From NCBI GenBank assembly GCA_950097015.1, contig CATNEN010000005.1, positions 558,001 through 622,000 on the forward strand: a DNA stretch of 64,000 nt, written 5' to 3'. Within the stretch, counting starts at the first letter, position 1, and every line of letters begins with the position of its first letter. Below the pieces are notes generated by a model that saw only the letters and a program-made list of their open reading frames with translations, was not told where the DNA came from and did no database searches. The position numbers and the translations under genes were made by a program. Shown here piece after piece: positions 2,073 through 42,299 of the stretch. This DNA is from Macrostomum hystrix. Its lineage: Eukaryota; Animalia; Platyhelminthes.

Positions 2073-2481
2073 ATATCTTGCACTTGTAAGATTCGTCTTT
2101 AGACTCGAAGTATACCAGCCGCTCGGTCACCTTTGTCATCCTGCACAAATTTTCCGCTTGTTAATTTTGTTTAGTCGCATCGCTAAGTGTACCCAGTTTA
2201 CTGTAGCAAATAGCTTTTCGTCGCATTAGATGTAGGCGTGCGCGTCATTTTGTAAAGTTATTCTAGAGAAAAAATGTGAAAAAAATATATAATTTGTTCT
2301 TTTTTCTCGCCCATTTTCGTGTCAATTTTTTTATGATCGTTCTTACTTCATATTTTAAAATATGCAAAACTAGTGCATAGTGTTTGTCCTAATTAGACTA
2401 CTTACAGTAGAAATAAGCAAATACGAGTATGAGTACATTTTATGGCCTGATTAAAAAAACGTGTCACAATAATTTCTCCAG

Positions 2482-5455
2482 TCTCATTACGCGGGCATCG
2501 TCAGCGGCGTCGGAGGAGTCGGTGGCAGCGCGGGACAGAACACAAACAGCAACAGCAGCAGCAGCAGTGTCGGCGGCGGCGGTAGCGTCGGCGGCCCCAA
2601 ACGCAAAGAGATTTACAAATATGAAGCTCCTTGGCCAGTTTACAGCATGAACTGGTCGTCTAGGCCGGACAAAGGCTTTCGACTGGCTCTTGGATCATTT
2701 GTCGAGGAATATAATAACAAAGTACAGGTTTGTACAAATTGACTTTTTTATTGTTTTATCTTTTTTGTTTCGCCACACGGTTAAGGACACAAATTGACAA
2801 GTATCCAGACACTGATATTGACAGTTAATTACTAACTATAAAATAAAAAAATTACAGACCCCATGATTGACAAGTTGCAGGCCCTAATTGACAAGCTAGA
2901 TACACTGATGTTGACATTTTACAGACAGATTGGCACTGAAATCGACAGTTACAGACACTGAAATTGACAACTAGAGACACTGAAATTTACAGCTAGAGAC
3001 ACTGAAATCGACACTTACAGACACTGAAATTGACAGCTAGAGACACTGAAATTGACAGTTACAGACACTGAAATTGACAGTTACAGGCACTAAATATGAC
3101 AGTTACAGGCACTAAATATGACAGTTACAGGCACTAAATATGACAGTTACAGGCACTAAATATGACAGTTACAGGCACTGAATATGACAGTTACAGACAC
3201 TGAATATGACAGATACAGACACTGAAATTGACAGTTACAGACGATGAAATTGACAGTTACAGACAGTGAAATTGACTCATTCGCTCCCAATCACCAGGTG
3301 GTCTGCATGGAAGACGACAGGCTGACGCCAAAGTGCGTATTCGATCATCCCTATCCAACTACGAAGGTCATGTGGCTTCCTGACTCCAAGGGCACTGCAG
3401 CCTGTCAGGCCGACCTTCTGGCTACCAGCGGCGACTATCTGAGGGTCTGGCGCATTGGCGACAATGAAGCCAAACTGGAATGCCTGCTGAATAACAACAA
3501 GAACTCGGACTTCTGCGCACCGCTGACCTCGTTTGATTGGAATGAAACTGATCCTAGCATTATTGGCACTGCGTCTATTGACACCACCTGTACTATCTGG
3601 GGCCTGGAGGTGAGACTGCACTAATTCTCTAGATCCAGATTATCTAGATACTGATTCTATAGATACCGATTCTCTAAATACCGGTTCTCTAGATAACGAT
3701 TCTCTAGACACTGATTCTATAGATACCGATTCTATAGATACCGATTCTCTAGATACCGATTCTCTAGATACCGATTCTCTAGACACTGATTCTATAGATA
3801 CCGATTCTGTAGATACCGATTCTATAGATACCGATTCTCTAGATATTTATTATTATACATTTTTTATTCCTAATATCCTAGATCCCCATTTCCCAGATGC
3901 CAATTTCCAGATCCCGATTTCCCAGATCCTAATTTCCTAGATTTTTTTTTCTAGATCCCAATTTTCTATATTTAATTTTACAAAGATAATTTACTAGATC
4001 CTATTTTTAATCCCATTTTTAATAGCAATTTTTTCGATCCCAATTTCCTGGATCCCAATCTCCTGTATCCCAATTTCCTGGATCCCAATTTCCTGGATCC
4101 CAATTTCCTAGATCCCAATTTCCTAGATCCCAATTTCCTAGATTCAGATTCCCATCTAACAAGCTTCCCCTCGTCGAATCCCAGACCGGGCAAGCCATCA
4201 GTCGAGTTGTGAGCGGCCACGTTAAAACTCAACTAATCGCTCACGACAAAGAGGTCTACGACATTGCATTCAGTCGTCAGGGCAACGGGCGCGATCTGTT
4301 TGCCAGCGTCGGCGCCGACGGTTCGGTGCGGATGTTCGACCTGCGCCATCTGGAGCATTCCACCATCATCTATGAGGATCCGAATCGAGGAGCACTGCTC
4401 CGACTGGCATGGAATAGGCAGGATCCCAATTATTTGGCCACATTCTCTAACGATTCTAACGAAGTGGCGCTATTGGACACCAGAGTGCCCTGCATGCCAG
4501 TGGCTAAACTGTCCAATCACAGGGCCTGCGTTAATGGCTTGGCTTGGGCGCCGCATTCGCCTAAGCATATCTGCACCGCTGGTTAGTGCGCAAATTGCTC
4601 TACTTAAAGTAGCGTGACGTTTAATTTTTCTAGTATCCACTTTTTTAATCTAGATAACGGAATTTGTAAACAAATAGCATACGATAAAAAGTGGTGTCCC
4701 ATTTAAGTACACATAATAGGCAGTTTTGTAAATATGTTCAAAATATGTACACTATTTGGGCCACAGTATTCATGTACAATATATGTACACTAATTGGGCT
4801 ACAGTATTCATGTTCAATATATGTACACTGATTGGGCCTCAGTATTCATGTACAATATATGTACACTAATTGGGCTACAGTATTCATGTTCAATATATGT
4901 ACACTGATTGTGCCACAGTATTCATGTACAATATATGTACACTAATTGGGCCACAGTATTCATGTACAATATATGTACACTGATTGGGCCACAGTATTCA
5001 TGTACAATATATGTACACTGATTGGGCCACAGTATTCATGTACAATATATGTACACTGATTGCCACAGTATTCATGTACAATATATGTACACTAATTGGG
5101 CCACCGTATTTATGTACAATATATGTACACTACTTGGGCCACCGTATTTATGTACAATATATGTGCGTTTTTTGGGCCACAATAATTATGTAAGAAATAT
5201 GTACATAGCAAGATTGGCCGCAATAGATAGTTAAATGTTATTAGGTTGCACAATCTGCACCCAAAGTATTTCCCAACCCCAGGCGACGATCACCAAGCCC
5301 TTATCTGGGACATCCAATCGGTGCCCCGGCCAGTTGACGATCCGATTCTGGCGTACACGGCAGCCGGCGAAATCAATCAGGTACAATGGGGCGGCCTACT
5401 GACAGATTGGATCGCAATTTGCTACAACAACTGCTTGGAGGTGCTGCGCGTGTGA
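2482..5455 (+). CDS. DCAF7: DCAF7/WDR68/AN11 WD40 scaffold, 4 exons (2482-2727, 3298-3609, 4185-4581, 5283-5455)
   Basis: [12 protein letters not shown]...[15 protein letters not shown] | FDHPYPTTK...[12 protein letters not shown]...[19 protein letters not shown] | [20 protein letters not shown] | [10 protein letters not shown]...[15 protein letters not shown]. All junctions are GT-AG and phase-compatible. There is no in-frame ATG before the conserved N-terminus (in-frame TAA at 2470). Confidence 0.96.
2930..3275. repeat. 22-bp minisatellite in DCAF7 intron 1 (ACAGACACTGAAATTGACAGTT)
   Basis: Visible tandem units. Confidence 0.9.
3630..4150. repeat. Two adjacent short-unit minisatellites in DCAF7 intron 2 (AGATACCGATTCTCT-type; GATCCCAATTTCCTA)
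   Basis: Visible tandem units at 3630-3845 and 3885-4150. Confidence 0.9.
4744..5170. repeat. 38-39-bp minisatellite in DCAF7 intron 3
   Basis: ATATGTACACTAATTGGGCCACAGTATTCATGTACAAT units. Confidence 0.9.
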
Positions 5456-5694
5456 CCCTAACGGCCCCTAATTTAACTCTGCTTTGTGACGGCAGTTATC
5501 GTTTTTATAGGTTTTTTAACGGTGCTTTTTTGGTTTGATGACAGCCTTATTTTCAGTTGGTGAATCAAATAGTTTTCTTGTACCAACAGTGTACTAGAAA
5601 ATGATTGCTGTACACTATGTACACTATTGAAAGTGCTGTACACTTGTACTATAAATATCGACTTGGTCAGGAATGCACATGAAACTGTACTCTT

Positions 5695-6268
5695 GTACAT
5701 TTACCCTAGACTTCAACAGCAATGTAAAGGAGTGTACAAGAACTGTACACTTGTACATTTGCCCTAGACTTCAACAGCAATGTGAAGGAGTGTACAAGAA
5801 CTGTACACTTGTACATTTGCCCTAGACTTCAACAGCAATGTAAAGGAGTGTACAAGAACTGTTCACTTGTACATTAACCCTAGACTTCAACAGCAATGTA
5901 ATGGAGTGTACAAGAACTGTTTACTTGTACATTAACCCTAGACTTCAACAGCAATGTAAAGGAGTGTACAAGAACTGTTCACTTGTACATTAACCCTAGA
6001 CTTCAACAGCAATGTAATGGAGTGTACAAGAACTGTTCACTTGTACATTAACCCTAGACTTCAACAGCAATGTAATGGAGTGTACAAGAACTGTTCACTT
6101 GTTCATTAACCCTAGACTTCAACAGAAATGTAATGGAGTGTACAAGAACTGTACACTTGTACATTAACCCTAGACTTCAACAGCAATGTAATGGAGTGTA
6201 CAAGAACTGTACACTTGTAAATTAACCCTAGACTTCAACAGCAATGTAAAGGAGTGTACAAGATCTGT
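5695..6268. repeat. 58-bp minisatellite, ~10 copies, downstream of DCAF7
   Basis: CCCTAGACTTCAACAGCAATG recurs at 58-bp spacing. Confidence 0.92.
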
Positions 6269-8479
6269 CTTGGCGTCTAACTACACGTGACGTATTAAAC
6301 TGACAACCAACTGACAGAGTCACTATGCATTGAGTTTTACAGTTTGCACCGGATGGGGTAGTGTAGAACTAAAGTGAAGTTTGGAATTATTTTTTGTTCA
6401 AGTTTCTAACAATGCGTAGCTTTTCAACATAAAATTGGCATCATTTCGCTTTCTATGTGTCTTGTTTGCCTCGAGTCTCTTCCTAGTACTACGGTTATAT
6501 ATTGATATATATTATAATTAACTATTTCGCAGCCTACAAAGTAATTTTTTACAATCGAGAATTGCTTAAAATTCGTTTTTGCGCTAATGGCAACCTTCTC
6601 ACTTCAGTCAATTTATATAAAATTATATTTATTATGCGCCTCCCAATATTTATCGTCCAACCACAATTTGGCGTGTTTTCGTTGTAAATAAATATCTATT
6701 GCTTGCAACTTTTGTATCATTTTGACGTTATGTATATTGCTTCAGTCACAAATTTATAAAGCTTTTTAACAAAAAATTACTGGTTGTTTCACAACCATGT
6801 GCTGCTATATATTATTTTTATATCGATTGCAAATGTGTTAATGTGTTAAAATGTGTACTTTTTTCTGTCGTTAGCCACAAACGTGAACTAAGTTGACTAA
6901 AAATGCAGTACTCTTACCATCTAGCTCGAGTTTTACTGTCGATTAAGAAGTTGCTTTATCACAAAAAACGGTTTCAAATAATATTATAAACTCCAATGAA
7001 AAGGCAAAACAATCAACATTGAGACGAATGAACTACTAGCTATCTTGAAGCTTACATTTTAAAAGTAAACATCGAATGCCTGCATCCTTTAGAAAAAGTA
7101 AAACTACGAGCTCATAAGAAAAATCACAATTGATTGTGAAAATTTTCTACAGAGAGAACGATGAACAATATGCTGAGCAACAGTAAGTATTTTGAATACC
7201 ACAAAGAGTATAAAGCATGTACTGGGTCTATTTTAGGACTGTATTATTACTTTGATGTTATTAAATTAATTAAAAAAGAAAACTAGGTCACCTGACAGGT
7301 TATATCAACTGCTATGATATTCAAGAATAATATAACCAACCTCAATATGTAATTAAAAGAGATTCGTGGTGAAGTTACGCACCGGAGTTTCAACACATTA
7401 TAACAATTTTAGCTACGTTTATACACTCTTCATAGTTTTTACAAAAAAGCAAAGGCGGCGAATAAGAATAAAAAATAAACAAATATAAATAGTTTTTGAG
7501 ATATTTTGGTCGAAAAAATAGCAGTATTTAACTATCGTTGTTTTCATGACATTTATCGTGTTTTTATTGAAAAGTGTACAAAATATAAGCTTGTAAAATT
7601 GCTGCAATGCAAAATCGAAGACGAAAGAGTAAAATTTAGCAATAACAACATATATAATTTTACAAAAACGTTCTTAATTTTTTTTTTATTTTCTTGCACG
7701 CTATTAAATTGCAGTACAATGCTATGGTAATCAGTATTTTTTTATTTTTAGTGATTATAAAGAATATAAAGAAGAAAGATTATAAAAATGCCACAAATAC
7801 TTGTTTACTTAAGATAGTTCCTAACTTATGAAATAAAGCTTCTAAATTGAACTATAAGGGCTATCCAATTGAACTATATTGAAATATAAAGTTGTTTAAC
7901 AATTTTTTTTTAAATGAATAACAGATATTTTGCTTAAATAAATATGTGTTTGCAACATAATTTTGTTACTAAAGCAGAACTTTCAGATGTTCAGAAGCTT
8001 TTTAAAATAAAGTTAAGACAAAATTAAATATAACTCTGCTAATTAGAAAAGGAACGAGTACAAGATCGAATGTTGTTCAGGGTCATAGCTCAGGTTTTGT
8101 TTTGAAAAAACTAGAAAACATATTTCATTATAACTATATTATTTATAGGAATTTATACATTTATGTCATTGCTAGAGGCAGCCAGTATTTTATTGTAAAC
8201 TTGTATTTCGATTAAGCTTCAGATGGCTACATTGTAATTTTCTTTAATTCATAATGAAAGTGAGCGCAGATTGTAGCTGACGTTTTAACTAATTTTAGTT
8301 ATATTAGAAAATAAACATTTATTTAAAAACGAATAAATACTTCCATTGTTTCACAATAAATTTTAATATTCATTCATTTTCATTCGTAAATGTAGTATTG
8401 CAGTACGAGATATTTTATGTTATAATTTCTTGGTAAGATCCTAAGTAATATTAGGATGGACTACTGGAACATCATTTGG

Positions 8480-8712
8480 AGGTAATTCTATCCATTCCGC
8501 TGACTCCCGAGCATACAGGCCCACGGACACCACACGGACACCACACTCTCACGAATTCGAAAATCTGCCCTGACTTTCTCATCTTCCGCCTGTGTTAATT
8601 CTTACTGGGCTTTGAAGGTTTGACTCTCAAAGGATTCAATTGCACAACAAGCCCCCCCCAAACAAAGCCTTCTCTCCGCGGCAGCATCTAAAATTAATGT
8701 GGCCCTTGATGC
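8480..8712 (-). mobile_element. tRNA-headed SINE family, 5'-truncated copy
   Basis: Reverse complement contains GCCGCGGAGAGAAGGC...GGGGCTTGTTGTGCAATT...AGAAAGTCAGGGCAGAT...GGAGTCAGCGGAATGGA, shared with 15765-15955 and 59392-59751. Confidence 0.75.
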
Positions 8713-8906
8713 AGAGCAAGATTAAAAAATCCTTATTAGATAATACAAGTGTATTGAATACTAAGAATTATGAATTTAATAAATTATTTTTGTATTTAAT
8801 ATATCGTATTTTTCTATTTCCAAAACCTTCGTTCTTTTCAGCAACATTGTTATATTATAAAGTTACTAAAATCCGCAGTAGCACACACGCACAAATTTTC
8901 TAAAAA

Positions 8907-27086: not shown

Positions 27087-30000
27087 CTACTGTTTCTGAA
27101 GTCTATCGCAGGCCCTCAGGGCAGTAGCAGCGGCGGCTCGACCAAATCCGGCAGTTGGCACGTCGCGCTCGTTCCAGATTTCAACGCCGTCGCAGGAGCA
27201 GATTCGTTTGTCGTTGGCGAATAGGCCAGCGGAGCGGGCCACAACTCCAGCAGCCAGGATGGCCCCGTCTGGACCGTCGGCTGAATGAGACTCGCTGATG
27301 CTCAGGCAGCGGCCGACGAGATTCCAAAGCTGAAGTCGCTTAGAAATCAAGCTGAAGCGAAGCCGACCGTTGGGACCGGCTTGGGAGCGGCCGATGCGGC
27401 CAGTGGGATCGGACTGGGAAGTGGGAAATTTTTTTCGAGGCCGTTATTGCGACTGGATAATAAACTGCTTCTCGGCATTTCTCTAACAAGGCAAGAAGAC
27501 GCATTGGAGGTTTTTTAAATGAGAGAGGGGCGGAATGGAGGATGAAGGGCGGAGTGAAGGGCGGAATGGAGGAGGATGGAGGAAAGAGGGGCGGAATGGA
27601 AGATGATGGAGGCGACAGGGGCGGAATGGAAGATGATGGAGGATAGAGGGGCGGAATAGAGGATGATGGAGGAAAGAGGGGCGGAATGGAGGATGATGGA
27701 GGAAAGAGGGGCGGAATGGAGGATGACGGAGGATAGAGGGGGAATGGAGGATGATGGAGGAAAGAAGCGCGGAATGGAGGATGATGGAGGAAGAGAAGAA
27801 CTCAGGATGATGCATCTGATGGCTAATGAGGATGAAAATAAATGCAAATTTAGATATTACACGTGTACCTCACGTAGTAGCTACAACAAGAAAATAAGTG
27901 TTGAAATGTACACTTTATGTTTAGATTCAGGGCCATTAAGTCAAACAATATGCAAGCAGACTTGAAGAAGTGACTTCAATGTCACAATTCTTGCCAGTTT
28001 ATTTTCGCGTCAATTAAGAGACTTCGCACCGGAAACTCAACTTATTCACTGGAAATACTCAGAAATGCTCAGACATGCAACGGCCAGTTGAAAGCCAAGG
28101 AAAGGGATGGATTTGAAGGCCAGGCAAAGGGATGGATTTGAAGGCCAAGGAAAGGGATGGATTTGAAGGCCAGGCAAAGGGATGGATTTGAAGGCCAAGG
28201 AAAGGGATGGATTTGAAGGCCAAGGAAAGGGATGGATTTGAAGGCCAAGGAAAGGGATGGATTTGAAGGCCAAGGAAAGGGATGGATTTAAAAGCCAAGG
28301 AAAGGGATGGATTTGAAGGCCAAGGAAATGGATGGATTTAAAAGCCAAGGAAAGGGATGGATTTGAAGGCCAAGGAAAGGGATGGATTTGAAGGCCAAGG
28401 AAAGGGATGGATTTAAAAGCCAAGGAAAGGGATAGATTTGAAGGCCAAAATAAGATGTGGATTTGAAGGCTAAGGAATGGGGTGGGTTTGAAGGTCAAGG
28501 AAATGGTTGGGCTTGAGGGCCAAAATAAGATGTGGATTTGAAGGTCAAAGAAATGGGTGGGCTTAAAGGCCATAGAAAGGGGTGGGTTTGAAGGTCAAGG
28601 AAAGGGGTGGGTTTGAAGGTCAAGGAAAGGGGTGGGCTTGAAGGTCAAGGAAAGGGGTGGGCTTGAAGGTCAAGGAAAGGGGTGTGTTTGAAGGCTGCAG
28701 AGCGACAACAAATAGCAGTTGAATATAAAAATCAATAGTCAGTTCAAATGGTTCCTGAAGTGTTAGGAAATATTCTATAGACACGGAAGCGGTGATTCAA
28801 TCGCAGATGACAGTGTAGCTTAGCCAGGGTGCCTAGAGCACCGTGCGGCCTTGGCCTACAGTAGAACACGCGAGCCACGCGTGAATGCAGCAAGGCCATA
28901 GCGCACATGTGGCAAGGCTCGTCTGTGACGTAGGCATGCAGCCCTGTGCAGAGATAGTCGCTACGACCGCCCAGGCGTTGAACGGCCCGCAGCGTCGAGT
29001 GCCAAGTAGGACAGTGTCGTCGTTCATCGGCGCATTCGACTAGAATAGCATCGGAGCGCGGATCCACAATTAGACAGGCCGACGAAGGTATTGGAGGAGT
29101 TGAAGCTAATGAAGCAGCTGGGACGCAAGTAGTTTTATTGGACGTGTCACAAGTAACGTTGTTTGAAACACCAGAAGTAACGGTACTAGAAGCGCCAGAA
29201 GAAACGTCATTAGAAACGACAGAAGTAACGGGATTACAGATGCCAGAAGTAACGATATTAGTAACGCCAGAAGTAACGTTACTACAGGCTTCAGAAGTAA
29301 CGGTATAACAGGCTTCAGAAGTAACGGTATTACAGGCTTCAGAAGTAACGGTATTACAGGCTTCAGAAATAACGGTATAAGAAACGTGAGACGCAACGGT
29401 ATTGGAGACATTGCTAGACGCAGTAGACACTGCAGAAGTAACTTCAGTGCAAGCGCTGAACAAGCTTGAAGTTGCAGCAGCAGCAAAATGTCCAAGAGAC
29501 AAAGCCCTTCGCATATGCCTCAAACAGGCAGCAGTTTCTGCTTCAGTGAAGCAATCTAAAGACAATTCCGCTTCTAAAGCTTTATCGGCGTGAAAGGAGC
29601 AGGGCCAGTGGGCCGAAGCCAGATCCCATTGTCGGCGGGTACGCGGTGAAACGCCAGGCACCCTAGTGATCTCTATCGCATCCAATTTGCCTAGCCAAGT
29701 AGAAGCAAACTCATTGGAAGCTTTCAATCGTGACAGTTCGCTAGCGTGACAAAGAAGTATTCGATAGGACCGGCCATGGTCAACTCGGAGGAGGTCAGCG
29801 GAGGCGACGGGAGCGGCGCGTTTCAAATGACGCAGATCCTGAGCGGGAAATTTTTCGCTCAAAAATTTTTGCAATCCGCTCAGGGGCCGAAGATCGCCGG
29901 TTAATAAGCCAGATGCGATGGGCACGAGGTGCGGATTTAGGCAGGTCGCCTCGTCAGGCAGTATGCTGGTTAGGCCATAGACTATTGTTGCGGCGATGCT

Positions 30001-33000
30001 GCCGCTCCGTGGCTGCTGCTGCTGCTGCTGTTATTGTTATTGTTCGTTGATTACTTATTATACTCGGAAAGTTTTATAATTCCTTCAGGAAATTTCTTAT
30101 ATCTGCTTATAGAGGGGAGAAAAGGGGCAGGAAGGAAATGGATTAAGAAGCTGATATCTTGGATTAATGGATGGCATGAGTAGATTATTGAAGGGAAGTG
30201 GTGCCCGTATAAAACGAAATGGTCACAAAAAAGGGCTGTGACCGTTCCACTTGTGACCGTGGTCCGTAACGCTGGTGACCGTTTAATGTGACCGTTCATG
30301 TTCATGAAGATAGGGTCACCAAGTTACCGTTCACTGTGACCATACTTTGTGACCGATTGCAGGGTCACCATGTGACCGTTCACTGTGACCATATTTTGTG
30401 ACCGTTATGTTCAGGGTCACCATGTGACCGTTCACTGTGACCATATTTTGTGTGACCATTCTGTGTGTCCGTTGTGTGACTGGCAGTAGCACCAGAAAAT
30501 AGTAACAAGAAAAAAATCTATACATCTGAATATACTTAATATTTATTATGAATTATATCAAATGTAAAATGCCATGACTTTCTTTATATTGATAAAAAGG
30601 CAGTAGTGGCAGTAGCAAAAATAGCCAGTAAAATATAGCTAGTAAAAAGTCGCTGTATTTGTATGGGCAAACTGCCCGCGCATCAAATGCCATAACTTTT
30701 TATATGTAAATATTGGTATCGATGGTTATAAGCAATTTTAGGAAACATATAAAGGTACAAGGTGTAATAAGTTACTGGCACTACCTGCTTTCCAGCCAGC
30801 TTTCACTGGACACTTTGCATCACTTGTCTTGCTATGTTCAGCAACTATTGTTGGCCGTGTCATGCTTCATCATTTTCTGCACACCAAAGGCTGCGGCTTC
30901 GTCGTCGTCGCCACTGTCGTCGTCCTCCTTGGCGTCAACGTCACCGCCGTCAAGGTCAAGTTCCTTGGCGCTGTCAAGGTCACCGCCGCCTTCTTCATCA
31001 CCGGCTTCCTTCCTTCCGCCCTTGTTCCTTCCAGTGCGACCGCTGGGTGTCACTTTGAGTGGTGACTTCAATTTTCGGGCAGCACAGAAGGCAGTGCGCT
31101 TGAAAATCGTGGCATAGGACTTCTTCGGAAATTCCTCAGGGAACTTTAGCCCACTTATAAAAGCCTTAATGGCGAACTTTTTCTTCTTAGATACTTCCGG
31201 CTTCGGCGGCGGACCATCCTTTTTTGTCTTGCGGCCGGTGTAGGAACGGGTCGTTAGCTCCTCGGTTGAGAAGACTGTTCGGTACAGGGTCCGGAGCATT
31301 TTATCGCCGTCTGTACTGCTGAAACCTCCCTTCACATAGACAGACACCGCACGCTTGATCTGTTCATAGTCGGCGGCCGACACAACGACGTCGGGGCAGC
31401 GCGCTGTCAAGGCCCTTGTCTCGGGTGCACGCTTCTGCTGCTTTGCTGACGCCAATTGGATCTGGGCGCGAAGTTCTCTATCGTCCAGCAACGGAACAGA
31501 CGCCGCGGCAGAGACGCCGCCAACAGATGCCGCGGCAGAAGCGCCGCCAGCAGTACTGCTGCCTAGCACGTCAGTACTGTCTTCAACCGTGACATCCATC
31601 CCACTGATGCCGGTAGAAATTGCGCGTTGTAGTACCTCAATGGCAGAAAACACGGCGTCCTGCAGCACCACGGTGTACTTAGCAACAGCACCGCCTTCTT
31701 CCGACCTCGAATGTTCGACCCCGCTCTGGGCATGCTCCAGCTCACACTGCAGCTCACGGATTCTGATGACGGCGGCTTCCCATTTTTCCTTATACGCAGT
31801 CTGCTCATATTCAGCATCGTCAAGCCGGTGGTTCAATTCTTCGATCTGCCGTCCCTGGCTTTCTCTGTAGCCGTCGGCAGTCTGCTGCGCTAACTCTGCT
31901 GCTGTCCGGAGGTTCAAAACCTCCTGCCGGAGCGCCTGGCAGGTGGTGCAGCTGTTAGGAAGGTTGATACCTGCCGGCCTCTGCACCGCTTGACAGGCAC
32001 TGGCACCAGCCTCTGCAGCCGCCTTTGTGCGGTATGGCCCTTTGCATACACGCACGCGGTAGGCCTTGCCTACGGTGAACGGTCACATGGTGACCCTGAA
32101 CATAACGGTCACAAAATACGGTCACAGTGAACGGTCACATGGTGACCCTGAACATAACGGTCACAAAGTACGGTCACAGTGAACGGTCACATGGTGACCC
32201 TGAACATAACGGTCACAAAATACGGTCACAATGAACGGTCACATGGTGACCCGGACAAATGGTCACATTTTATGGACACCAAGTGGTAACATGAGACCAT
32301 GGCGGTCACAAAACGTGGTCACTAACGGTAACATGTGACCATGACAGTCACAACAACGGTCACAGCCCCTTTTTTGTGACCATTCCGTTTTATACGGGGT
32401 GGATTAATGGACGGAACTAGTGTATTAATAGATGACACAAGTGTATTAATGGATGGAAGAGGCAGATTATTGAATGGAAGGGGCGGATTAATGGAGGTAA
32501 GTAGCGGATTAATGGAGGTAAGTAGCGGATTAATGGAGGTAAGTAGCGGATTAATGGAGGTAAGGAGAGGATTAAAGGAGGTAAGGAGCGGATAAATGGA
32601 GGTAAGGAGCGGATAAATGGAGGTAAGGAGCGGATTAAAGGAGGTAAGGAGCAGAATAATGGAGGTAAGGGGCGGATTAAGGGAGGTAAGGAGCAGAATA
32701 ATGGAGGGCAGGGCGGATTAAAGGAGGTAAGGGGGCGGATAGATGGAGGTAATGAGCAGATTAAGGGAGGGAAGGGCGGATTAAAGGAGGTGGGTAGCGG
32801 ATTAATTTAGGTAAAGAGCGGATAATTGGAGGGAAGGGGCGGATTTATGGATGGAAGGAGCGGATTAATCGAGGAACGGGCGGATTAATGGAGTCAAGGA
32901 GCGGACGTAGACTTACATACAAATGATTAGAAAAGTGAGTAGGCTATATATTATTACTAAAAAAGATCTAGCAAGGCTTAATACATACCTGACTATCGTG

Positions 33001-33724: not shown

Positions 33725-34046
33725 TCTAGGACAGACAGACATCCAGGACAGACAGACATCCAGTACAGACAGATAGACAGACCGACAGGCAGAAAGACAG
33801 ACAGGCAGACAGGCAGGCAGACAGACAGACAGGCAGACAGACAGACAGGCAGACAGACAGACAGGCAGACAGACAGGCAGACAGACAGGCAGACAGACAG
33901 ACAGACAGGTAGACAGACATGCAAGTCAGATAAGCTAGTCAAATAATTTATCAAATCGAAATCAACTGAAAGGTAATAAAATTGCTCACCTCTTTCATAG
34001 CGGGCTCTAGTTCTGATAATGCCTGCTGTTCCAGTTTGTCGGCCAT
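27087..34046 (-). CDS. CCS: Copper chaperone for superoxide dismutase, 3 exons (34046-33990, 33510-32989, 27413-27087)
   Basis: LQFAVNMTCQSC (HMA MxCxxC); SOD-like domain GVVRILQ...FDGTVDGLE...GDLSGGLESCG; domain III VARSAGLFANDKRICSCDGVEIWNER (CxC). All junctions are phase-0 GT-AG. Confidence 0.93.
27525..27810. repeat. 30-bp purine-rich minisatellite in CCS intron 2
   Basis: GGGGCGGAATGGAGGATGATGGAGGAAAGA units. Confidence 0.85.
28090..28695. repeat. 25-bp minisatellite in CCS intron 2
   Basis: AAGGCCAAGGAAAGGGATGGATTTG units. Confidence 0.9.
28744..30027 (-). CDS. ADAT3: tRNA-specific adenosine-34 deaminase non-catalytic subunit, single exon nested in CCS intron 2
   Basis: DLRHLKR, HWPCSFH, HST (no catalytic Glu), YLCTGLHAYVTDEPCHMCAMALLHSRVARVFY, GALG...LH...LNHRF. 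The frame is open from TAACAG|30027 and has no ATG before the N-terminal domain. Confidence 0.92.
   Translation of the reverse strand, partial: QQQQQPRSGSIAATIVYGLTSILPDEATCLNPHLVPIASGLLTGDLRPLSGLQKFLSEKFPAQDLRHLKRAAPVASADLLRVDHGRSYRILLCHASELSRLKASNEFASTWLGKLDAIEITRVPGVSPRTRRQWDLASAHWPCSFHADKALEAELSLDCFTEAETAACLRHMRRALSLGHFAAAATSSLFSACTEVTSAVSTASSNVSNTVASHVSYTVISEACNTVTSEACNTVTSEACYTVTSEACSNVTSGVTNIVTSGICNPVTSVVSNDVSSGASSTVTSGVSNNVTCDTSNKTTCVPAASLASTPPIPSSACLIVDPRSDAILVECADERRHCPTWHSTLRAVQRLGGRSDYLCTGLHAYVTDEPCHMCAMALLHSRVARVFYCRPRPHGALGTLAKLHCHLRLNHRFRVYRIFPNTSGTI
30204..32398. mobile_element. 2195-bp CACTA/EnSpm(CMC)-type non-autonomous DNA transposon
   Basis: TIR CCCGTATAAAACG(A/G)AATGGTCACAAAAAAGGGCTGTGACCGTT at both ends; GTG duplicated at 30201-30203 and 32399-32401; inverted subterminal arrays of GTGACC motifs (52-bp unit). 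Confidence 0.88.
30838..32055 (-). CDS. Transposon-borne coiled-coil + BEN-like domain protein with acidic tail (5' end probably truncated)
   Basis: 405-aa open frame. DKMLRTLYRTVFSTEELTTRSYTGRKTKKDGPPPKPEVSKKKKFAIKAFI fits the BEN pattern (L..lF..eel...s.tG......kp.ld..k..aI). Heptad-rich segment; no DDE motifs; no ATG start. Confidence 0.7.
   Translation of the reverse strand: MRVCKGPYRTKAAAEAGASACQAVQRPAGINLPNSCTTCQALRQEVLNLRTAAELAQQTADGYRESQGRQIEELNHRLDDAEYEQTAYKEKWEAAVIRIRELQCELEHAQSGVEHSRSEEGGAVAKYTVVLQDAVFSAIEVLQRAISTGISGMDVTVEDSTDVLGSSTAGGASAAASVGGVSAAASVPLLDDRELRAQIQLASAKQQKRAPETRALTARCPDVVVSAADYEQIKRAVSVYVKGGFSSTDGDKMLRTLYRTVFSTEELTTRSYTGRKTKKDGPPPKPEVSKKKKFAIKAFISGLKFPEEFPKKSYATIFKRTAFCAARKLKSPLKVTPSGRTGRNKGGRKEAGDEEGGGDLDSAKELDLDGGDVDAKEDDDSGDDDEAAAFGVQKMMKHDTANNSC
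32470..32905. repeat. ~21-bp minisatellite (GCGGATTAATGGAGGTAAG..)
   Basis: Visible units; a degenerate version also lies left of the transposon (30110-30200). Confidence 0.85.
33575..33920. repeat. (CAGA)n-based microsatellite in CCS intron 1
   Basis: Visible. Confidence 0.9.
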
Positions 34047-34399
34047 GATTTGCAACTGAAAATTATTTTAACTGCTTTATTATTGTTCAACCTATTATTT
34101 TGGAATAACAGACAAAAACATAAATTACAGAAAAAAGTTATCAAGAATATCAATAATTTTTTTTAATACAAAAGACAACATCGTGAATTTTTATATTTGC
34201 ATCACAAGGCGAAAGAAATTTAAAATACTTGTATTGTAGTAAAGAAAATCTAAAGATGCAAAAACATCTGTCTTAAAAGTTTCGATCGCTAAAATTTGTA
34301 TAAATTACTAAATATACGAGTACTTTACGAGGACACGCTAAGATTCTATGTCACTAGAATAAGGGCCATAGAATTAAACATTAAAGTGAAGGAGGAGAG

Positions 34400-34676: not shown

Positions 34677-35693
34677 TTAGTGATAGAATCGCAAAGCGTT
34701 CAGGCCGCAATAGACGCGCCTTTTAAGATCATCCGGCAGCGACTCCAGGACAGATTTCAACACGCGTTCCGGATGATGCCTACGGCTGAAGTGGACGAAG
34801 AACAGTTGGCCGACTTTGTCGAATAGTCCAGGACGAGATGAAAAATCGTGCAGATGGCAGTGTCCGTATTTTTCTGCTAAATCTGTGAGGCCGTCAACGT
34901 AGGTCAATTCACAAATGAGCAGTTTGACTTTGAGCAGGTCGGGTACCGTCGGACAAGCCAAGACACTGAATCTGGTGTCTCCAGTATAGCCCAAAGTAGC
35001 CTCCCAGTGCGATTCTCGCAACTGCTGTCCATTGCGAGCTAATTCCGCCAACTCTGGCCCGGGTAAGTTAGCAAACTGTGGCAACAATTGACTACGCCTA
35101 CTGTACAGCAAGCAGCCAATGCTTGGCACTCGATGATCAGTAGCAAACGGTAAAATGCGCAAGTTTTTTGACAATTCGATGTCTTCGCCAGGCTTTGCTG
35201 GAAGAATTTTTCCGTAGAAAAAATCGGCCTTAACTTCAGCGTCTGGCTTTGCACTTTTTTTATTATTCGTTTTATTCTTGGATCCTGCGGTAGCCGATGA
35301 TTCTTCCTCGAGCTCGGCGTCGTTAGCGTCGTCGCCGTGAACAGTGCCAAATAAGCGTACGATATTGGAAAGTGGTTCAACTAGATGTTCTGGAACGTAA
35401 TAAACAGCGGGAGGCAGGCCAAACAGTTGACGCCGACGCATGTGCTGATGAATAGCTCCGCAGTGATCAACGTGACCGTGGCTGACAAAGACCACATCAG
35501 CGCTGATGGCCTGGTGCGGACAGGCGCCAATGTCTAAGGCCAGACGAAAGCCCTGGCCGTGTACAACGATGCAAGTCTCAAAGCCGGACACTGACCAATC
35601 GAAGACGCGCAGTTTGTCGCGCGGATTGTCAACAAAAAATTCGCTCCAAGACGGAGCGCCGGCATTGGCGGGCAAATCTTCAGCGTGCGACAT
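34677..35693 (-). CDS. Short-form TM-type tRNase Z (plant TRZ1-like metallo-beta-lactamase), paralog B, intronless
   Basis: WSVSGFETC, LDIGACP, SHGHVDH (HxHxDH), TDHRVPS, short flexible arm QLLPQFANLPGPEL, YTGDT, CELTYVD, YGHCH, HFSRRH; ATG at 35693. Confidence 0.88.
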   Translation of the reverse strand: MSHAEDLPANAGAPSWSEFFVDNPRDKLRVFDWSVSGFETCIVVHGQGFRLALDIGACPHQAISADVVFVSHGHVDHCGAIHQHMRRRQLFGLPPAVYYVPEHLVEPLSNIVRLFGTVHGDDANDAELEEESSATAGSKNKTNNKKSAKPDAEVKADFFYGKILPAKPGEDIELSKNLRILPFATDHRVPSIGCLLYSRRSQLLPQFANLPGPELAELARNGQQLRESHWEATLGYTGDTRFSVLACPTVPDLLKVKLLICELTYVDGLTDLAEKYGHCHLHDFSSRPGLFDKVGQLFFVHFSRRHHPERVLKSVLESLPDDLKRRVYCGLNALRFYH

Positions 35694-35824
35694 GCTTTCT
35701 TTGTTGTTACTGATTATCCCCTCTGTGTTAGCTGCAATTTTGTTTTGTCTGTTTAACGTCAACAAATAATGCTTGTCATTTACTTTAACTAGGCTTTTGA
35801 CTCTTTTACCAAAACTCTGCTACA

Positions 35825-37130: not shown

Positions 37131-37674
37131 CAATCTACAAGGATTTACATAGCAAAATAAGTAAAAATCTACTCAAAACAAATTACAAAGAACTAACAAA
37201 TATAGCAAGCGTGGTAGGATATCATTAAGCGACAATATCTCTTGAACGGATGTAACAAACTTAGAAAACTGACTTCTATTTATTTAGCTGTGAATATTAC
37301 ACAATGAGATGGCATCGTTAGAACGAGCACAAATCATAAAACAGTTACAATGCTCACATTCTTTACACGTTGCTTGATTTCTAAAAATACGAGCTATGAT
37401 CGCAGAGAGGCTAATTTATAATAAAGCAATCATGATAAGGAATAGCATAATTATGCACAAAATAATTAGGCTTGAAACAATGCTTGGGCGTTTAAAGCTG
37501 ACTATCAAACAGAAATAGATAAATAATGACACAAAGGACTCAAATGGTATAGAACGTGTAGAAGAAAATTATTCATTTTAAGCAAAACCTAACAGACTAT
37601 TATTTGGCTAAGTATTACAAAATGTTGTAATACAATATCGTATTGTATTTTTACTAAACCCCGGTGCTAAACGG

Positions 37675-38265
37675 AGTCAGTGATGGTAGCTTCAGGTTCT
37701 ACTAGTCAGTGACGGTAGCTTCAGGTTCTACAAGTCAGTGATGGTAGCTTCATGGTCTACTAGTCAGTGATGGTAGCTTCAGGGTCTACTAGTCAGTGAT
37801 GGTAGCTTCAGGGTCTACAAGTCAGTGATGGTAGCTTCAGGGTCTACTAGTCAGTGATGGTAGCTTCAGGGTCTACTAGTCAGTGATGGTAGCTTCAGGG
37901 TCTACTAGTCAGTGATGGTAGCTTCAGGGTCTACTAGTCAGTGATGGTAGCTTCAGGGTCTACTAGTCAGTGATGGTAGCTTCAGGGTCTACTAGTCAGT
38001 GATGGTAGCTTCAGGGTCTACTAGTCAGTGATGGTAGCTTCAGGTTCTACTAGTCAGTAATGGTAGCTTCAGGGTCTACAAGTCAGTGATGGTAGCTTCA
38101 GGGTCTACAAGTCAGTGATGGTAGCTTCAGGGTCTACTAGTCAGTGATGGTAGCTTCAGGGTCTACTAGTCAGTGATGGTAGCTTCAGGGTCTACTAGTC
38201 AGTGATGGTAGCTTCAGGGTCTACTAGTCAGTGACGGTAGCTTCAGGGTCTACTAGTCAGTGACG
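37675..38265. repeat. 29-bp minisatellite, ~20 copies, abutting the RCE1 stop
   Basis: TAGTCAGTGATGGTAGCTTCAGGGTCTAC. Confidence 0.95.
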
Positions 38266-38288
38266 AAACATGCTGACTTCTGTCTGAT

Positions 38289-39188
38289 CTACCAGAAGCA
38301 GTCGCATTGCGCCGAGAACATTCCTGGCTCAGTCAGAGGGCCCAGCAACAGCATCCAAGCAACTAAGCCGGCAACAAAAGTGCAGCCAAGTCCAATTAGT
38401 TTAAATCCGCGCAATTTTAATAAGGCCGGAAAGTCGGGAAATCCCATTAGATTGCAGAAGGAATGCGCGGCGCATACCGCAGCAAGATGTCCTGTGCGCA
38501 GGTACAGATAAGCTGAGTAAGCTCCGAATATATAAGTGTAAGAAAACTGCAGACTTGACTGTAGCAAGCTAGACATCAACGGGTAGCCTCGCTGAAGCCT
38601 ACTAATTAGATGATGAAAATGTGCCAATCCAAAGAATAGCGGCGAAATGAATGTAGCCTGTAGGCAGGTTAAATGTACGCATAGTACCGGCAGCATTAGG
38701 GCACGAAAGCACAATTCTTCCGTCACCGGAGCTAATAGAAGGGTCCGACAACAGCGCAGGCTAAGCAACGGCTCTCTATCAAAAAATCCATCGCCGGTCT
38801 CCCATGCTAGGAGAATTGGGCCCAGAAATAGAATGCCAGTTAGAAGCAGAGAAGCGCCAATAGCGTGCAACAGGCCAGACCAACGTAGGCCAATGAGCTG
38901 CAACACGTCCGGCCAGCTAGCAGCGGACGCTTTCATTAGAAAATAACGATAGCATAATAATACACTGAAGCTAACAGCCGATACACCAAGAAATCGACGC
39001 CTAATCACTGTTGGATTGTCGCGATCGACACCGTAGCTTGACGAATATTGTTTGACATTGGTTTTGCCAACACCGGCGCCCAGCTCCCATAGGTAGAGGC
39101 TGAGTACAAAGCCGGCAGCGATGAGTAAGGCGAACAGGCCGGCTACCCAGGCGGGCAGGGGCTGAAGAGGATCTGGGACTGGTAGGCA
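38289..39188 (-). CDS. RCE1: CAAX prenyl protease 2, single exon starting at a splice acceptor
   Basis: FVLSLYLW...DRDNPTVIRRRF, LLAPVTEELCFRA, FFGLAHFHH, QFSYTYIFGAYSAYLYLRTGHL, HSFCNLMGFP. The frame is open from TTTTCAG|39188 with no ATG before TM1. Confidence 0.94.
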   Translation of the reverse strand, partial: CLPVPDPLQPLPAWVAGLFALLIAAGFVLSLYLWELGAGVGKTNVKQYSSSYGVDRDNPTVIRRRFLGVSAVSFSVLLCYRYFLMKASAASWPDVLQLIGLRWSGLLHAIGASLLLTGILFLGPILLAWETGDGFFDREPLLSLRCCRTLLLAPVTEELCFRALMLPVLCVHLTCLQATFISPLFFGLAHFHHLISRLQRGYPLMSSLLQSSLQFSYTYIFGAYSAYLYLRTGHLAAVCAAHSFCNLMGFPDFPALLKLRGFKLIGLGCTFVAGLVAWMLLLGPLTEPGMFSAQCDCFW

Positions 39189-39425
39189 CTGAAAATAATA
39201 GGGAAAATAATTTGTTTGACGCGCCTGACGATGACAAAGTTGGGCAAAGTAATCCCTAAAGTAATCATGAGAAGAATGATCACAATTTAGCTTATAGCTA
39301 GGATAAGAGCTAGCATTTCTTACAAGAGAAGTCGGGAGTTAGAATATCAGTCTAAATGGAAACAATCAAAGTTATAAAAAAATGCACTGTTACTATAGAC
39401 GCAGTTTATCATTTAAGTATCACAA

Positions 39426-39844
39426 CCCTGTAAAAAATTCGGCTGCTTCTTCGGCGGGTTTTTGTGCAAAATAGGAGTGGAATCTACCCAAATCCCCCCT
39501 ATCTCGCAAGAGTTAAAGAAACCACCCAGGAAGCAGCCGATGTAACCGTAAATTGTGCGGAAACCGCCGAAGAATCACCCGAACCAGTGGCCCATGGGAC
39601 AACCAGAGAATTATTTACTGGCGATTCCTCGGCGGTTTCTGAGCATGGAATCTTCCGAACTGGAGGATTCTTTGGGTGATTCCATTTCGCCACCAAGAAG
39701 CACCGAGAAAACGCCCAGTTGGGTAGATTCTAAGCATGGAATCATCGGATTGGTATGTTTCCACCGTTCGGCTGTTTCTTTTTCTGGAAACACCGCAGAT
39801 TCCAACTGGAATCACCCAAAGAAACATCCCTATTTTTTAGCGGG
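39426..39844. mobile_element. 419-bp EnSpm/CACTA-like MITE
   Basis: AA|CCCTGTAAAAAAT ... ATTTTTTAGCGGG|AA; imperfect TIR, 2-bp TSD. Confidence 0.65.
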
Positions 39845-40534
39845 AATGGTAATAATGGTAATAATAAAGAATGATAATATGACCAGCAACTATGTTTCTT
39901 CAAAGATCAAATGAAACAATTGTTTTCATTATATTTTAAATCAATTCTATGAAATTCAATTCGTATAAATCAATGATAGAAATCTATAGTTGTTATATAT
40001 ACGAGTATATATTGTACGCATACAATATAACACTCAAGCTACGGAGTAGGTGCACGAACGATAACATTAACAAAAAATAATTAGAAGCAAAACAAAAGTC
40101 TAGAGGCACATCAAGCAGTTTTTTGACACATGGCATCTCTAAAACAAAATGTTAAGAATATATACGAGAAATAATATATATATATATATAATAATAATAT
40201 ATATATGTATTGACCAACGACATTGTCAGCAAGCCTGGAATTAAAACAAAAAATGCAATCCACATTTAAAACGATTCTTTTAGTTTTTTACTGACACGCT
40301 TATTGTTTGATATTTTATAAGTAAAGTTCAAATGGACTACTATTAAGTAGTTGTAAGTAGCAAGTTTAGCATCCCACATACTAAACTAGCGACGCAGAGG
40401 GATCTCTCAAACATCTCTTAAACGGGTAAATATTTTCTAAAGTCTGCTGTCATTGTATCTAATTCTGTCGATATAAAACCAACTCCCTGGGGCAAATATC
40501 TCCCCTAGTTTGAAAAGTGACTAAGACAACCTCT

Positions 40535-42238
40535 TTAAGAGTACAAAAGCTGCTTAGCAGTCAAGGCACAATAGACTCGTCGACTAAGCTGAGTAGGCAG
40601 GCCAGAATAAACTCGCTGCCTTATTTCTTTCGGTGAATAACGATTGCTGAAGTGCACAAATACTAACTGATTTATCGATCCAAATAGTTTCCAATGCTTA
40701 GCAAATTGGTCTAGATGACAGTGCCCATATTTGTCAGCCCGTTCGATTGCACCATCTAGAAATGTTAGCTCGGAGATGAGCAGGCGAACTTTTAATAAAT
40801 CTGGCACATCGCCTGACATAAACACGTCGAATTTCGTGTCTCCTGTGTAGGCTAGCAACGGCTCCGATTTGGGCTCACCGTGAATAGGTAGGCCTTGAGC
40901 CTCACGAGTGTGCAATTCTAGCCGACTAAGATTGCGACACTCTGGCAATAGGTTAAAACTTTTTCGACGCAGAATACAGCCCAGACTAGGGACGCGATGC
41001 TCTGTGCCAAATATTTCCAGTGTTAAATCAGACAGATTGTCGCCGATTGGGAAACTATCGCCTGACTGTACGCCGATGATTTTGTTAGGAGCTGAAATAG
41101 CAGCCGAATAATCTTCGTCATCTTGCATGCGCGCAAATATTTCCAGAGTGGCTTTGATTGGTTCAACTAAGCATTCTGGCATGTAGTAAGTAGCTGGCGG
41201 CAGACGCAACAGCTGACGCTTTCTAATGTGCATATGCAAAGCGCCGCAGTGATCCACGTGACCGTGACTGATGAATACAACATCAGAGTCGACGGCCTGA
41301 GGTGGACAGGCGCCAAGGTCTAATACAAGATGAAATCCACAACCGTGTACAACTATGCAAGTTTCATTACCAGAAATGGACCAATCGAATAGCGAGAATT
41401 CGTCGAAACGATGCCACAATCTTTCGGAGTTGGGATAGCGTGCAATAACTGCCGATTTTTTTTGCTCTTGGGTCTCCTGATGGGACCCCTGTTGCTGTTG
41501 GATTTCCTGATTCCATGACTGTTGTTGATTTTGGACATCCTGATTGAAAGAATGTTGCTGCTGGGTACCCTGATGCCACGCCTGTTGCTGCTGGGTACCC
41601 TGATGCCACACCTGTTGCTTCTGGGTACCCTGATGCCACGCCTGTTGCTGCTGGGTACCCTGATGCCACGCCTGTTGCTGCTGGGTACCCTGATGCCACG
41701 CCTGTTGCTGCTGGGTACCCTGATGCCACGCCTGCTGCTGCTGGGTACCCTGATGCCACGCCTGCTGCTGCTGGGTACCCTGATGCCACGCCTGCTGCTG
41801 CTGGGTACCCTGATGCCACGCCTGTTGCTGCTGGGTACCCTGATGCCACGCCTGCTGCTGCTGGATACCCTGATGCCACACCTGTTGCTGCTGGGTACCC
41901 TGATGCCACGCCTGTTGCTGTCGATTGCGTCTTTGATGACGCTTTTGTTGTTGCTGAGCTAGTTCGTCTGGTTGCCACTGTTGGTTCTTGGGCACTCTGT
42001 ACTGTGCATGATGCTGAATTTGAGCTGACTCCGGCTTGTACTGTTGCTGCTCGTGTGTCCCATTTATTTTATTACGGTCCCGTGGCGGAGTAGGATGACT
42101 CAATTGAGGCTGATTGCGCTCTGGATGGGTTGGCGCGCTGTTGCTAAGCACTTCTTTGTGCGTATTTATTGTGATATCAACTAGAGTAGAAAGTGCCTCT
42201 GGCGCGTCGAGAGGCACGTTGCCTTCAGCTGATTGTTC
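40535..42238 (-). CDS. TM-type tRNase Z paralog A with N-terminal Q-rich (QQQQAWHQGT)n extension
   Basis: FDWSISGNETC, LDLGACP, SHGHVDH, TEHRVPS, YTGDT, SELTFLD, YGHCH, HFSNRY. The frame is open from CTTCCAG|42238 with an in-frame TGA just upstream; the first ATG lies after the HxHxDH motif. Confidence 0.88.
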   Translation of the reverse strand, partial: EQSAEGNVPLDAPEALSTLVDITINTHKEVLSNSAPTHPERNQPQLSHPTPPRDRNKINGTHEQQQYKPESAQIQHHAQYRVPKNQQWQPDELAQQQQKRHQRRNRQQQAWHQGTQQQQVWHQGIQQQQAWHQGTQQQQAWHQGTQQQQAWHQGTQQQQAWHQGTQQQQAWHQGTQQQQAWHQGTQQQQAWHQGTQQQQAWHQGTQKQQVWHQGTQQQQAWHQGTQQQHSFNQDVQNQQQSWNQEIQQQQGSHQETQEQKKSAVIARYPNSERLWHRFDEFSLFDWSISGNETCIVVHGCGFHLVLDLGACPPQAVDSDVVFISHGHVDHCGALHMHIRKRQLLRLPPATYYMPECLVEPIKATLEIFARMQDDEDYSAAISAPNKIIGVQSGDSFPIGDNLSDLTLEIFGTEHRVPSLGCILRRKSFNLLPECRNLSRLELHTREAQGLPIHGEPKSEPLLAYTGDTKFDVFMSGDVPDLLKVRLLISELTFLDGAIERADKYGHCHLDQFAKHWKLFGSINQLVFVHFSNRYSPKEIRQRVYSGLPTQLSRRVYCALTAKQLLYS

Positions 42239-42299
42239 CTGGAAGAAGCAACGAAATATTTTTTTAATTCATAAAAAAAAGCTTGGGATTTTAATCTTG

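Follow-up and report, generated by a model that had tools for sequence, protein, structure and literature searches.

How do conserved genes whose reading frames begin directly at a splice acceptor, and which lack an ATG of their own, obtain a start codon? The question is raised by a window of Macrostomum hystrix DNA (the whole stretch analysed, 64,000 nucleotides long), in which it had been predicted that four such genes, namely DCAF7, ADAT3, RCE1 and tRNase Z A, open at phase-0 acceptors and borrow the terminal AUG of a spliced leader (SL). On inspection all four sites match that description: the frame begins immediately after the AG, and an in-frame ATG is absent ahead of the conserved residues. 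The acceptor of a further gene, coding for an LRR protein, is in phase 0 as had been noted, though this gene does possess an ATG of its own at codon 29. The relevant features are given below, with a slash at each splice junction.

2482 to 2727, forward strand: first coding exon of DCAF7, opening at ttctccag/TCT CAT behind a TAA at 2470-2472, with the donor CAG/GTTTGT at 2728.
28744 to 30027, reverse strand: ADAT3, a single-exon frame of 427 codons plus stop, opening at TAA CAG/(CAG)x5, first ATG at codon 172.
38289 to 39188, reverse strand: RCE1, a single-exon frame of 299 codons plus stop, opening at ttttcag/TGC CTA, first ATG at codon 85.
40535 to 42238, reverse strand: tRNase Z A (RNase ZS1-like), a single-exon frame of 567 codons plus stop, opening at cttccag/GAA CAA, first ATG at codon 336.
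41553 to 41920, reverse strand: an in-frame tandem repeat of 30 nt (12.3 copies, 96% matches) encoding AWHQGTQQQQ.
46186 to 46905, reverse strand: first coding exon of the LRR gene, opening at ttgcag/TCT, ATG at codon 29.

All five acceptors are in phase 0, and the frames behind them stay open for 86-567 codons. Pfam matches in the window (dCMP_cyt_deam_1, Rce1-like and Lactamase_B_2) uphold the gene identities. As predicted, an in-frame stop lies close upstream in DCAF7 (the TAA at 2470-2472), ADAT3 (TAA at 30033-30031) and tRNase Z A (TGA, 11 codons back); RCE1 indeed has no upstream in-frame start, its nearest stop being 51 codons back and the interval free of in-frame ATGs. Alignments also bear out that the first internal ATG of each gene, at codons 56 (DCAF7), 172 (ADAT3), 85 (RCE1) and 336 (tRNase Z A), falls within or past conserved motifs. 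Codon 56 of DCAF7 is the M of YSMNWS, inside a conserved block (...NNKVQ) that is 91% identical to DCAF7/WDR68 fragments. The codon-85 ATG of RCE1 sits behind the invariant residues V28, S30, L31, Y32, D57, R65 and V69, and the N-terminus of the open frame aligns within a few residues of the initiator Met in RCE1 of other animals. In tRNase Z A, whose match in the PDB is RNase ZS1 (7xgt), the first ATG lies just behind the HxHxDH motif, and the AWHQGTQQQQ repeats fall in its Met-free N-terminal extension, where the RNA contigs break. ADAT3, named from a protein word search, has an N-domain about 70% identical between M. hystrix and M. lignano, and comparison of the same two species places the conserved AW..WPEA.N motif of the LRR protein ahead of its codon-29 ATG. 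Matches to DCAF7 exon 1 are confined to its conserved half, and the matching proteins have low-complexity N-termini that start with a Met of their own. M. hystrix proteins were absent among the word-search matches for ADAT3, RCE1 and DCAF7 exon 1, and looking up the Tim10-like protein described below by exact match gave none either.

Contigs of RNA type from runs X4, X5 and X6 (library type not on record) were compared with the region 38100-43900, which also contains a control gene whose leader junction is proven by RNA.

42652 to 43168, reverse strand: Tim10/DDP-like gene with its SL junction at 43168, where a G is shared between genome and leader.

RCE1 mRNA contigs cover 38205-39189; in all three runs the genome match extends from 38205 or 38236 to 39189 with zero mismatches and is followed by 24-25 non-genomic letters. 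In X4 and X5, contigs of tRNase Z A match the genome over 41891-42239 and then carry 23 non-genomic letters. At both genes the final matching base is the G of the acceptor, to which the last G of the leader would match as well. At the Tim10-like acceptor 43168 the overhang, present as a loose end in X6, corresponds in reverse complement to the leader letters GAAGACTCAATTTATTGCAT, the 3' portion of the spliced leader of Macrostomum, and this loose end terminates in CAT plus the shared G; a leader ending in AUG is thus present in the organism, as had been presumed. By likeness to 43168, the overhangs at 39189 and 42239 probably represent the spliced leader too, and an assembler that halts inside a sequence common to many mRNAs would be expected to leave such overhangs, 20-25 nt long, at the three genes. 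The search for leader-bearing reads at 39188 and 42238 gave contigs that break there with 23-25-letter overhangs, the leader itself being read at 43168. No cis joint, including any into the RCE1 and tRNase Z A sites, was seen in these contigs across 38100-43900. The original prediction of SL trans-splicing thus gains overhangs placed exactly at the acceptors of RCE1 (three runs) and tRNase Z A (two runs), while for ADAT3 and the LRR gene its support comes from the comparison with M. lignano.

The uniform phase had been taken as evidence of selection to stay in frame with the leader AUG, an argument that is circular: each AG was picked as the one in frame behind the upstream stop, which leaves the count of four in four without independent statistical weight. 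What goes beyond chance is the length of ATG-free frame before conserved residues, which in tRNase Z A reaches 335 codons, while the other two frames have 7-8 stops each. A general rule is further contradicted by Schistosoma mansoni, where just 28% of trans-spliced mRNAs have the leader AUG in frame (Cheng 2006, as quoted in PMC9851317), and by the Tim10-like gene itself. There the AUG of the leader is out of frame and begins an upstream frame of 13 codons; the TAA of this short frame (43131-43129) overlaps the ATG that belongs to the gene (43129-43127).

In the syntenic locus of M. lignano, gene order and strand are the same, and four of the five acceptors (RCE1, tRNase Z A, ADAT3 and LRR) are again in phase 0. 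RCE1 opens there at ttccag/TGT CTG with matching first codons; its in-frame ATG at codon 15 shows that leader dependence is not universal within the genus. tRNase Z A opens at cttcag/GAA with an identical first codon, and its extension, unalignable between the species (80 residues in M. lignano, 260 in M. hystrix), is open in both, with the first ATG past HxHxDH in both. ADAT3 opens at TAA CAA CAG/CGT, likewise in phase 0 and without an ATG. The LRR ortholog opens at ttacag/GGC, is ATG-free for 231 codons in both copies and has an annotated CDS that starts without an ATG. More generally, the RNA-based NCBI CDSs of M. lignano RCE1 (marked 'partial'), tRNase Z A and LRR all start without an ATG, a few codons past the acceptor; as these three are 5'-open in an RNA-based annotation, no cis exon with an ATG was found for them. 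On the same contigs two other genes, whose M. hystrix counterparts serve as controls here, are annotated from an ATG.

34680 to 35693, reverse strand: tRNase Z B, a paralog with its own ATG (MSHAEDL...) right before the conserved domain.
33990 to 34055, reverse strand: 5' mini-exon of CCS, 19 codons, with its ATG at 34046-34044 and ending MKE/GTGAGC.

The CCS mini-exon is cis-spliced to CCS exon 2 (33510-32989, reverse strand), which itself opens without an ATG at a phase-0 acceptor; the arrangement in M. lignano is equivalent, and the annotated CDS begins at the mini-exon ATG. An ATG-less opening at a phase-0 acceptor is by itself insufficient to indicate leader dependence, because CCS exon 2 has one and yet takes its ATG from a cis mini-exon. 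That both species have this arrangement gives weight to the alternative that a cis-spliced upstream exon provides the ATG of ADAT3 (the CCS mini-exon, possibly with exon 2, giving a CCS N-terminus joined to ADAT3) and/or of DCAF7 (an unrecognised 5' exon), which we consider unlikely on the whole. ADAT3 is nested in a CCS intron; any of six CAGs in tandem, each of them in phase 0, could be its exact acceptor, and both CCS donors (MKE/GTGAGC at 33989 and DSQ/GTATGT at 32988) are in phase 0 as well, so that a cis splice from a CCS exon to ADAT3 would also be in frame. In addition, the ADAT3 acceptor TAACAG departs from the preferred SL motif [T/C]TNCAG, and parasitic flatworms widely share acceptors between cis- and trans-splicing (PMC12582326). 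The M. lignano gene predictions P0001 and P0002 do fuse CCS with ADAT3; they are, however, evident chimeras (tRNase Z B, CCS and ADAT3 together) without RNA backing, and the three neighbouring ATG-less genes are 5'-open in the RNA-based annotation. With respect to DCAF7, the stretch of 1.09 kb that separates the fumarase stop from the acceptor contains six ATG...GT candidates in phase 0, none of which (0/6) has a GTRAG donor, and no plausible ATG exon with a strong donor was found in 1391-2470. Neither a word search nor a HMMER search of representatives with exon 1 as the query returned a Macrostomum ortholog of DCAF7. A local leader copy able to serve as a cis exon was also sought, with no match in the window when up to three mismatches were allowed, and neither Rfam nor tRNA scanning, applied to the window and to the spacer 42240-42660, gave a match.

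Two further alternatives have little in their favour. If translation began at the internal ATGs or at non-AUG codons, the frame ahead of the first ATG would be an untranslated leader, and the poorly conserved, repetitive, low-complexity extension of tRNase Z A could be accommodated in this way. Such a start would nevertheless lie behind TM1 and D57/R65 of RCE1, HxHxDH of tRNase Z, the conserved block of DCAF7 and the N-domain of ADAT3, and the frames concerned run on for 85-335 codons without a stop, unlike the other frames, which makes it very improbable. An origin of the overhangs at 39189 and 42239 as assembly chimeras or remnants of adapters is hardly credible: the missing record of library type leaves some room for it, but the break occurs at an identical base in two to three separate runs, at consensus acceptors and in two genes, the leader is read in the overhang at a third acceptor 900 nt away, and the M. 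lignano annotation agrees.

We therefore favour initiation at the leader AUG and regard it as probable for the set as a whole. A spliced leader of roughly 35 nt, ending ...UUGCAUG, would be joined to RCE1 at 39188 and to tRNase Z A at 42238, where its terminal AUG, landing in phase 0, would serve as the initiator. We infer translation from this codon because neither mRNA has another AUG before conserved, essential residues. The predicted products begin with M-CLPVPD... (RCE1) and M-EQSAEG... (tRNase Z A); the 260-residue Q-rich extension with its repeats is part of the tRNase Z A product. The LRR gene (46905), ADAT3 (30027 or a following CAG) and DCAF7 (2482) most likely use the leader AUG too, and would likewise be trans-spliced in this species; in the case of DCAF7 the argument is solely the lack of a plausible upstream ATG exon.

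The use of a leader AUG as a start codon was reportedly tested by experiment in S. mansoni by Cheng, Cohen, Ndegwa and Davis (J Biol Chem 2006). AUG is the 3' end of every flatworm leader on record (PMC12582326), and more than 40 S. mansoni cDNAs are described as needing it (PMC9851317). The present genes resemble the class of Cheng et al. in having a leader that ends in AUG, a phase-0 acceptor and no other AUG before conserved residues; they differ in belonging to a free-living basal flatworm, in that several of them lie in one conserved same-strand cluster, and in that initiation is here deduced. The leader is the one published for M. lignano (PMC8629364), and the Macrostomum leader ends in TTGCATG (PMC8629364, PMC10468722), the final ATG being termed a translation start codon in the M. 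hystrix genome paper (PMC10468722). Agreement with the Macrostomum SL studies (Ustyantsev and Berezikov 2021, PMC8629364; G3 2023, PMC10468722), in the parts available, extends to the [T/C]TNCAG motif at RCE1, tRNase Z A, DCAF7 and LRR, to the class of conserved housekeeping genes, which is enriched among trans-spliced genes, and to the same-strand cluster with repeat-filled spacers. Unlike the present analysis, both studies, in those parts, count trans-spliced genes and call the leader ATG a likely start, and list no dependent genes. A likeness also exists to slORFs (PMC9851317), which come into existence only once the leader is added; here, in contrast, the frame so created is that of the main conserved protein and not a novel or alternative one. 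It thus appears largely correct to regard RCE1 and the short tRNase Z, and probably ADAT3, DCAF7 and the LRR protein, as new examples of an already known mechanism, knowledge of which is itself unchanged by these cases.

For annotation the consequences are practical. Gene finders that require a genomic ATG truncate, fuse or drop such genes, and the M. lignano records contain 5'-open CDSs, CCS-ADAT3-tRNase Z chimeras and a missing ADAT3 model; adding the leader ATG at mapped SL sites would mend many Macrostomum gene models. As these genes would yield no functional protein unless trans-spliced, they are clean test cases for the use of a leader AUG in weak context, and a single cluster offers the contrast between a leader AUG that is in frame (RCE1, tRNase Z A) and one that is out of frame and bypassed (Tim10-like).

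Within the cluster, the Tim10-like gene is separated from tRNase Z A by about 410 nt, and tRNase Z A from RCE1 by about 1.2 kb, both spacers consisting partly of high-copy repeats; with regard to a possible operon, for which spacers below 1 kb after adjustment for repeats would be expected, low-depth contigs lie within the spacers, and no single contig bridges two genes. A tentative and rather doubtful extension is that, in the cluster formed by LRR, Tim10, tRNase Z A, RCE1, tRNase Z B and CCS with ADAT3, four of the seven genes gave up their start codon and have been leader-dependent since, at the latest, the split of M. hystrix and M. lignano. If true, initiation at a donated leader AUG would be a stable condition under selection in Macrostomum, perhaps found mainly in operon-like clusters; it might act as a check by which only trans-spliced, resolved mRNAs are translated, and the ADAT3 acceptor might serve both the leader and the CCS exons.

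Four conserved genes of the window, DCAF7, ADAT3, RCE1 and tRNase Z A, had been predicted to open in frame directly at a splice acceptor without an ATG of their own, and these openings are present in the sequence as claimed, together with the phase-0 acceptor of an LRR gene:

2482 onwards, + strand: DCAF7 exon; acceptor ttctccag/TCT CAT; in-frame TAA at 2470-2472; first in-frame ATG at codon 56
30027 onwards, - strand: ADAT3 exon; TAA CAG/CAG; in-frame TAA at 30033-30031; first in-frame ATG at codon 172
39188 onwards, - strand: RCE1 exon; ttttcag/TGC CTA; in-frame stop 51 codons upstream; first in-frame ATG at codon 85
42238 onwards, - strand: tRNase Z A exon; cttccag/GAA CAA; TGA 11 codons upstream; first in-frame ATG at codon 336
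46905 onwards, - strand: LRR gene exon; ttgcag/TCT; TAA 9 codons upstream; first in-frame ATG at codon 29

The coordinates agree with the original prediction for the upstream in-frame stops of DCAF7, ADAT3 and tRNase Z A and for the missing upstream start of RCE1, where no in-frame ATG occurs in the 51 codons from the upstream stop to the acceptor. Behind the ADAT3 stop stand six CAGs in tandem, which leave the exact acceptor ambiguous, with all choices in phase 0. The first ATG was also said to fall within or after conserved motifs, and it does so in DCAF7 (inside a block that sequence search finds common to DCAF7/WDR68), in RCE1 (downstream of residues invariant in an alignment of 8 species) and in tRNase Z A (directly downstream of HxHxDH); in the LRR gene a conserved motif lies upstream of the codon-29 ATG. 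The gene identities were upheld, tRNase Z A matching the solved structure RNase ZS1 (7xgt).

Contig matching covered 38100-43900 and used runs that behave as RNA assemblies, their library type not being on record; contigs of runs X4-X6 match the window without differences. For RCE1, contigs from three runs match 38205/38236-39189 with zero mismatches and then carry 24-25 non-genomic letters, and for tRNase Z A, contigs from two runs match 41891-42239, followed by 23 such letters. The junction positions of these two genes are established. At 43168, the acceptor of a neighbouring Tim10-like gene, a loose end from X6 reads, in reverse complement, as the 3' part of the spliced leader (SL), the final G of which coincides with the acceptor G. 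Three things make it probable that the overhangs at 39189 and 42239 are SL as well: this spelled-out case at a distance of 900 nt, their start exactly at the predicted acceptors, and the uniform length of 20-25 nt; such a length would be expected if the assembler halts within sequence common to many mRNAs. Thus, of the predicted SL reads, the breaks exactly at the 39188 and 42238 acceptors with 23-25 extra letters are found, and their SL identity comes by analogy with 43168. No cis joint was reported by the contigs across 38100-43900.

X1, a run from a closely related other organism, gave one low-depth contig at 43168, matching 42915-43168 perfectly and bearing a different overhang, the reverse complement of which, TCTTTTTTGCAT, still ends in ...TTGCAT(G); either a leader variant in a relative or an assembly error may account for it. 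Two spacer elements (39425-39850 and 42290-42520) reach very high depth (up to ~1000, against ~16 for genes) and have borders where divergent loose ends are numerous, and are therefore high-copy repeats; the second begins with a tRNA-like sequence, not called by ARAGORN or Rfam.

The published M. lignano SL has 35 nt and the 3' end TTGCATG (PMC8629364), and the M. hystrix genome paper calls the SL highly conserved and terms its final ATG a translation start codon (PMC10468722). Under the proposed mechanism, the SL would be trans-spliced at these acceptors onto pre-mRNAs, possibly polycistronic transcripts of the same-strand cluster, placing its terminal AUG directly before the first genomic codon as Met1; the predicted proteins would then open with Met and SHYAG (DCAF7), a Q run and PRSG (ADAT3), CLPVPD (RCE1), EQSAEG (tRNase Z A) or SCTFNC (LRR); without trans-splicing, RCE1 and tRNase Z A could presumably yield no functional protein. 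As there is no alternative start, we infer that translation begins at the SL AUG.

An ATG-less opening at an AG does not by itself prove donation by the SL, because exon 2 of the neighbouring CCS gene, which looks the same, receives its ATG from a cis-spliced mini-exon:

34046-33990, - strand: CCS 5' mini-exon; 19 codons including the ATG (19-20 across species), ending ...MKE/GT; donor GTGAGC; cis-spliced to exon 2
33510-32989, - strand: CCS exon 2; phase-0 acceptor, no ATG upstream of the MTCQSC metal-binding motif

M. lignano shares the mini-exon arrangement, also in its annotation (syntenic stretch L002, 11261-12100), and in both species the intron after it is packed with (CTGT)n-type microsatellite. 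A cis origin is a real rival for ADAT3, which could be spliced from a CCS exon, both CCS donors being phase 0 and the joined product hence in frame. Nor does the common phase, earlier read as a sign of selection in four of four genes, carry that meaning, for it follows from how the sites were chosen. Among the trans-spliced mRNAs of S. mansoni, 28% have the SL AUG in frame, about chance (PMC9851317). By contig evidence the Tim10-like gene is trans-spliced with the SL AUG out of frame: at 43127-43168 (-) it begins a 13-codon uORF, and the stop of this uORF and the ATG of the gene itself overlap (TAATG), an arrangement that resembles termination-reinitiation or leaky scanning.

Hidden cis ATG exons can be weighed against M. 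lignano, whose orthologs are 51-81% identical to the window proteins, which marks the window as coming from another Macrostomum. Via the RCE1 protein P0011, named "partial" at NCBI, two copies of the syntenic locus were reached (L001-L004), and the order and strand are those of the window: LRR, Tim10, tRNase Z A, RCE1, tRNase Z B, and CCS with nested ADAT3. In L003 and L004 the whole cluster occurs twice in nearly identical form, on different contigs (NIVC01001119.1 and NIVC01000206.1), which fits the partly duplicated genome. In the RNA-based NCBI annotation, the RCE1, tRNase Z A and LRR coding sequences begin without ATG a few codons past the acceptor, while those of tRNase Z B and CCS, annotated on these contigs too, begin at ATGs. 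This speaks against hidden cis ATG exons in the former three genes.

The RCE1 acceptor there (ttccag/TGT CTG) is followed by opening codons as in the window, and an in-frame ATG stands at codon 15, where the window reads GTA; strict SL dependence of RCE1 may therefore be specific to the window species. The tRNase Z A acceptor (cttcag/GAA) is followed by the first codon known from the window and closely preceded by an in-frame TAA; the first ATG comes at codon 156, again downstream of HxHxDH. The N-terminal extensions (80 residues in M. lignano, 260 in the window) are unalignable and stop-free in both species, other frames holding 7-13 stops. The following repeat is absent from the M. lignano ortholog; it is young and expanded the Met-free extension:

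41553-41920, - strand: tRNase Z A, N-terminal extension; in-frame repeat with a 30-nt unit, 12.3 copies, 96% matches

The LRR gene (ttacag/GGC) is ATG-free for 231 codons and ADAT3 (TAA CAA CAG/CGT) for 109, the N-terminal 150 residues of ADAT3 being well conserved between the species. ADAT3 is missing from the NCBI annotation of this locus, and the public gene models P0001 and P0002 (UniRef) are chimeras that join ADAT3 to tRNase Z B and CCS exons, likely caused by ADAT3 having no genomic ATG.

DCAF7 is an intact multi-exon gene, for which database sequence searches found no Macrostomum ortholog. Three points favour an SL start for it indirectly: its acceptor (CTCCAG) is of consensus SL type, no plausible ATG exon lies within the 1.09 kb between the fumarase stop and the acceptor, and the same-strand fumarase gene upstream (TAA at 1389-1391, +; AATAAA at ~1611) suggests that DCAF7 may be the downstream gene of a two-gene unit. 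Of the four genes predicted to be SL trans-spliced, RCE1 and tRNase Z A have their junction positions in contigs, and ADAT3 and DCAF7 are candidates from their sequence.

Initiation at an SL AUG is reportedly described for schistosomes in Cheng et al. 2006, and the mechanism proposed here is the same; it is already known, and recognised for Macrostomum too (PMC10468722), and the window genes are probably further examples. The additions are modest: several of the probably SL-dependent genes are clustered, and two Macrostomum species share this state.
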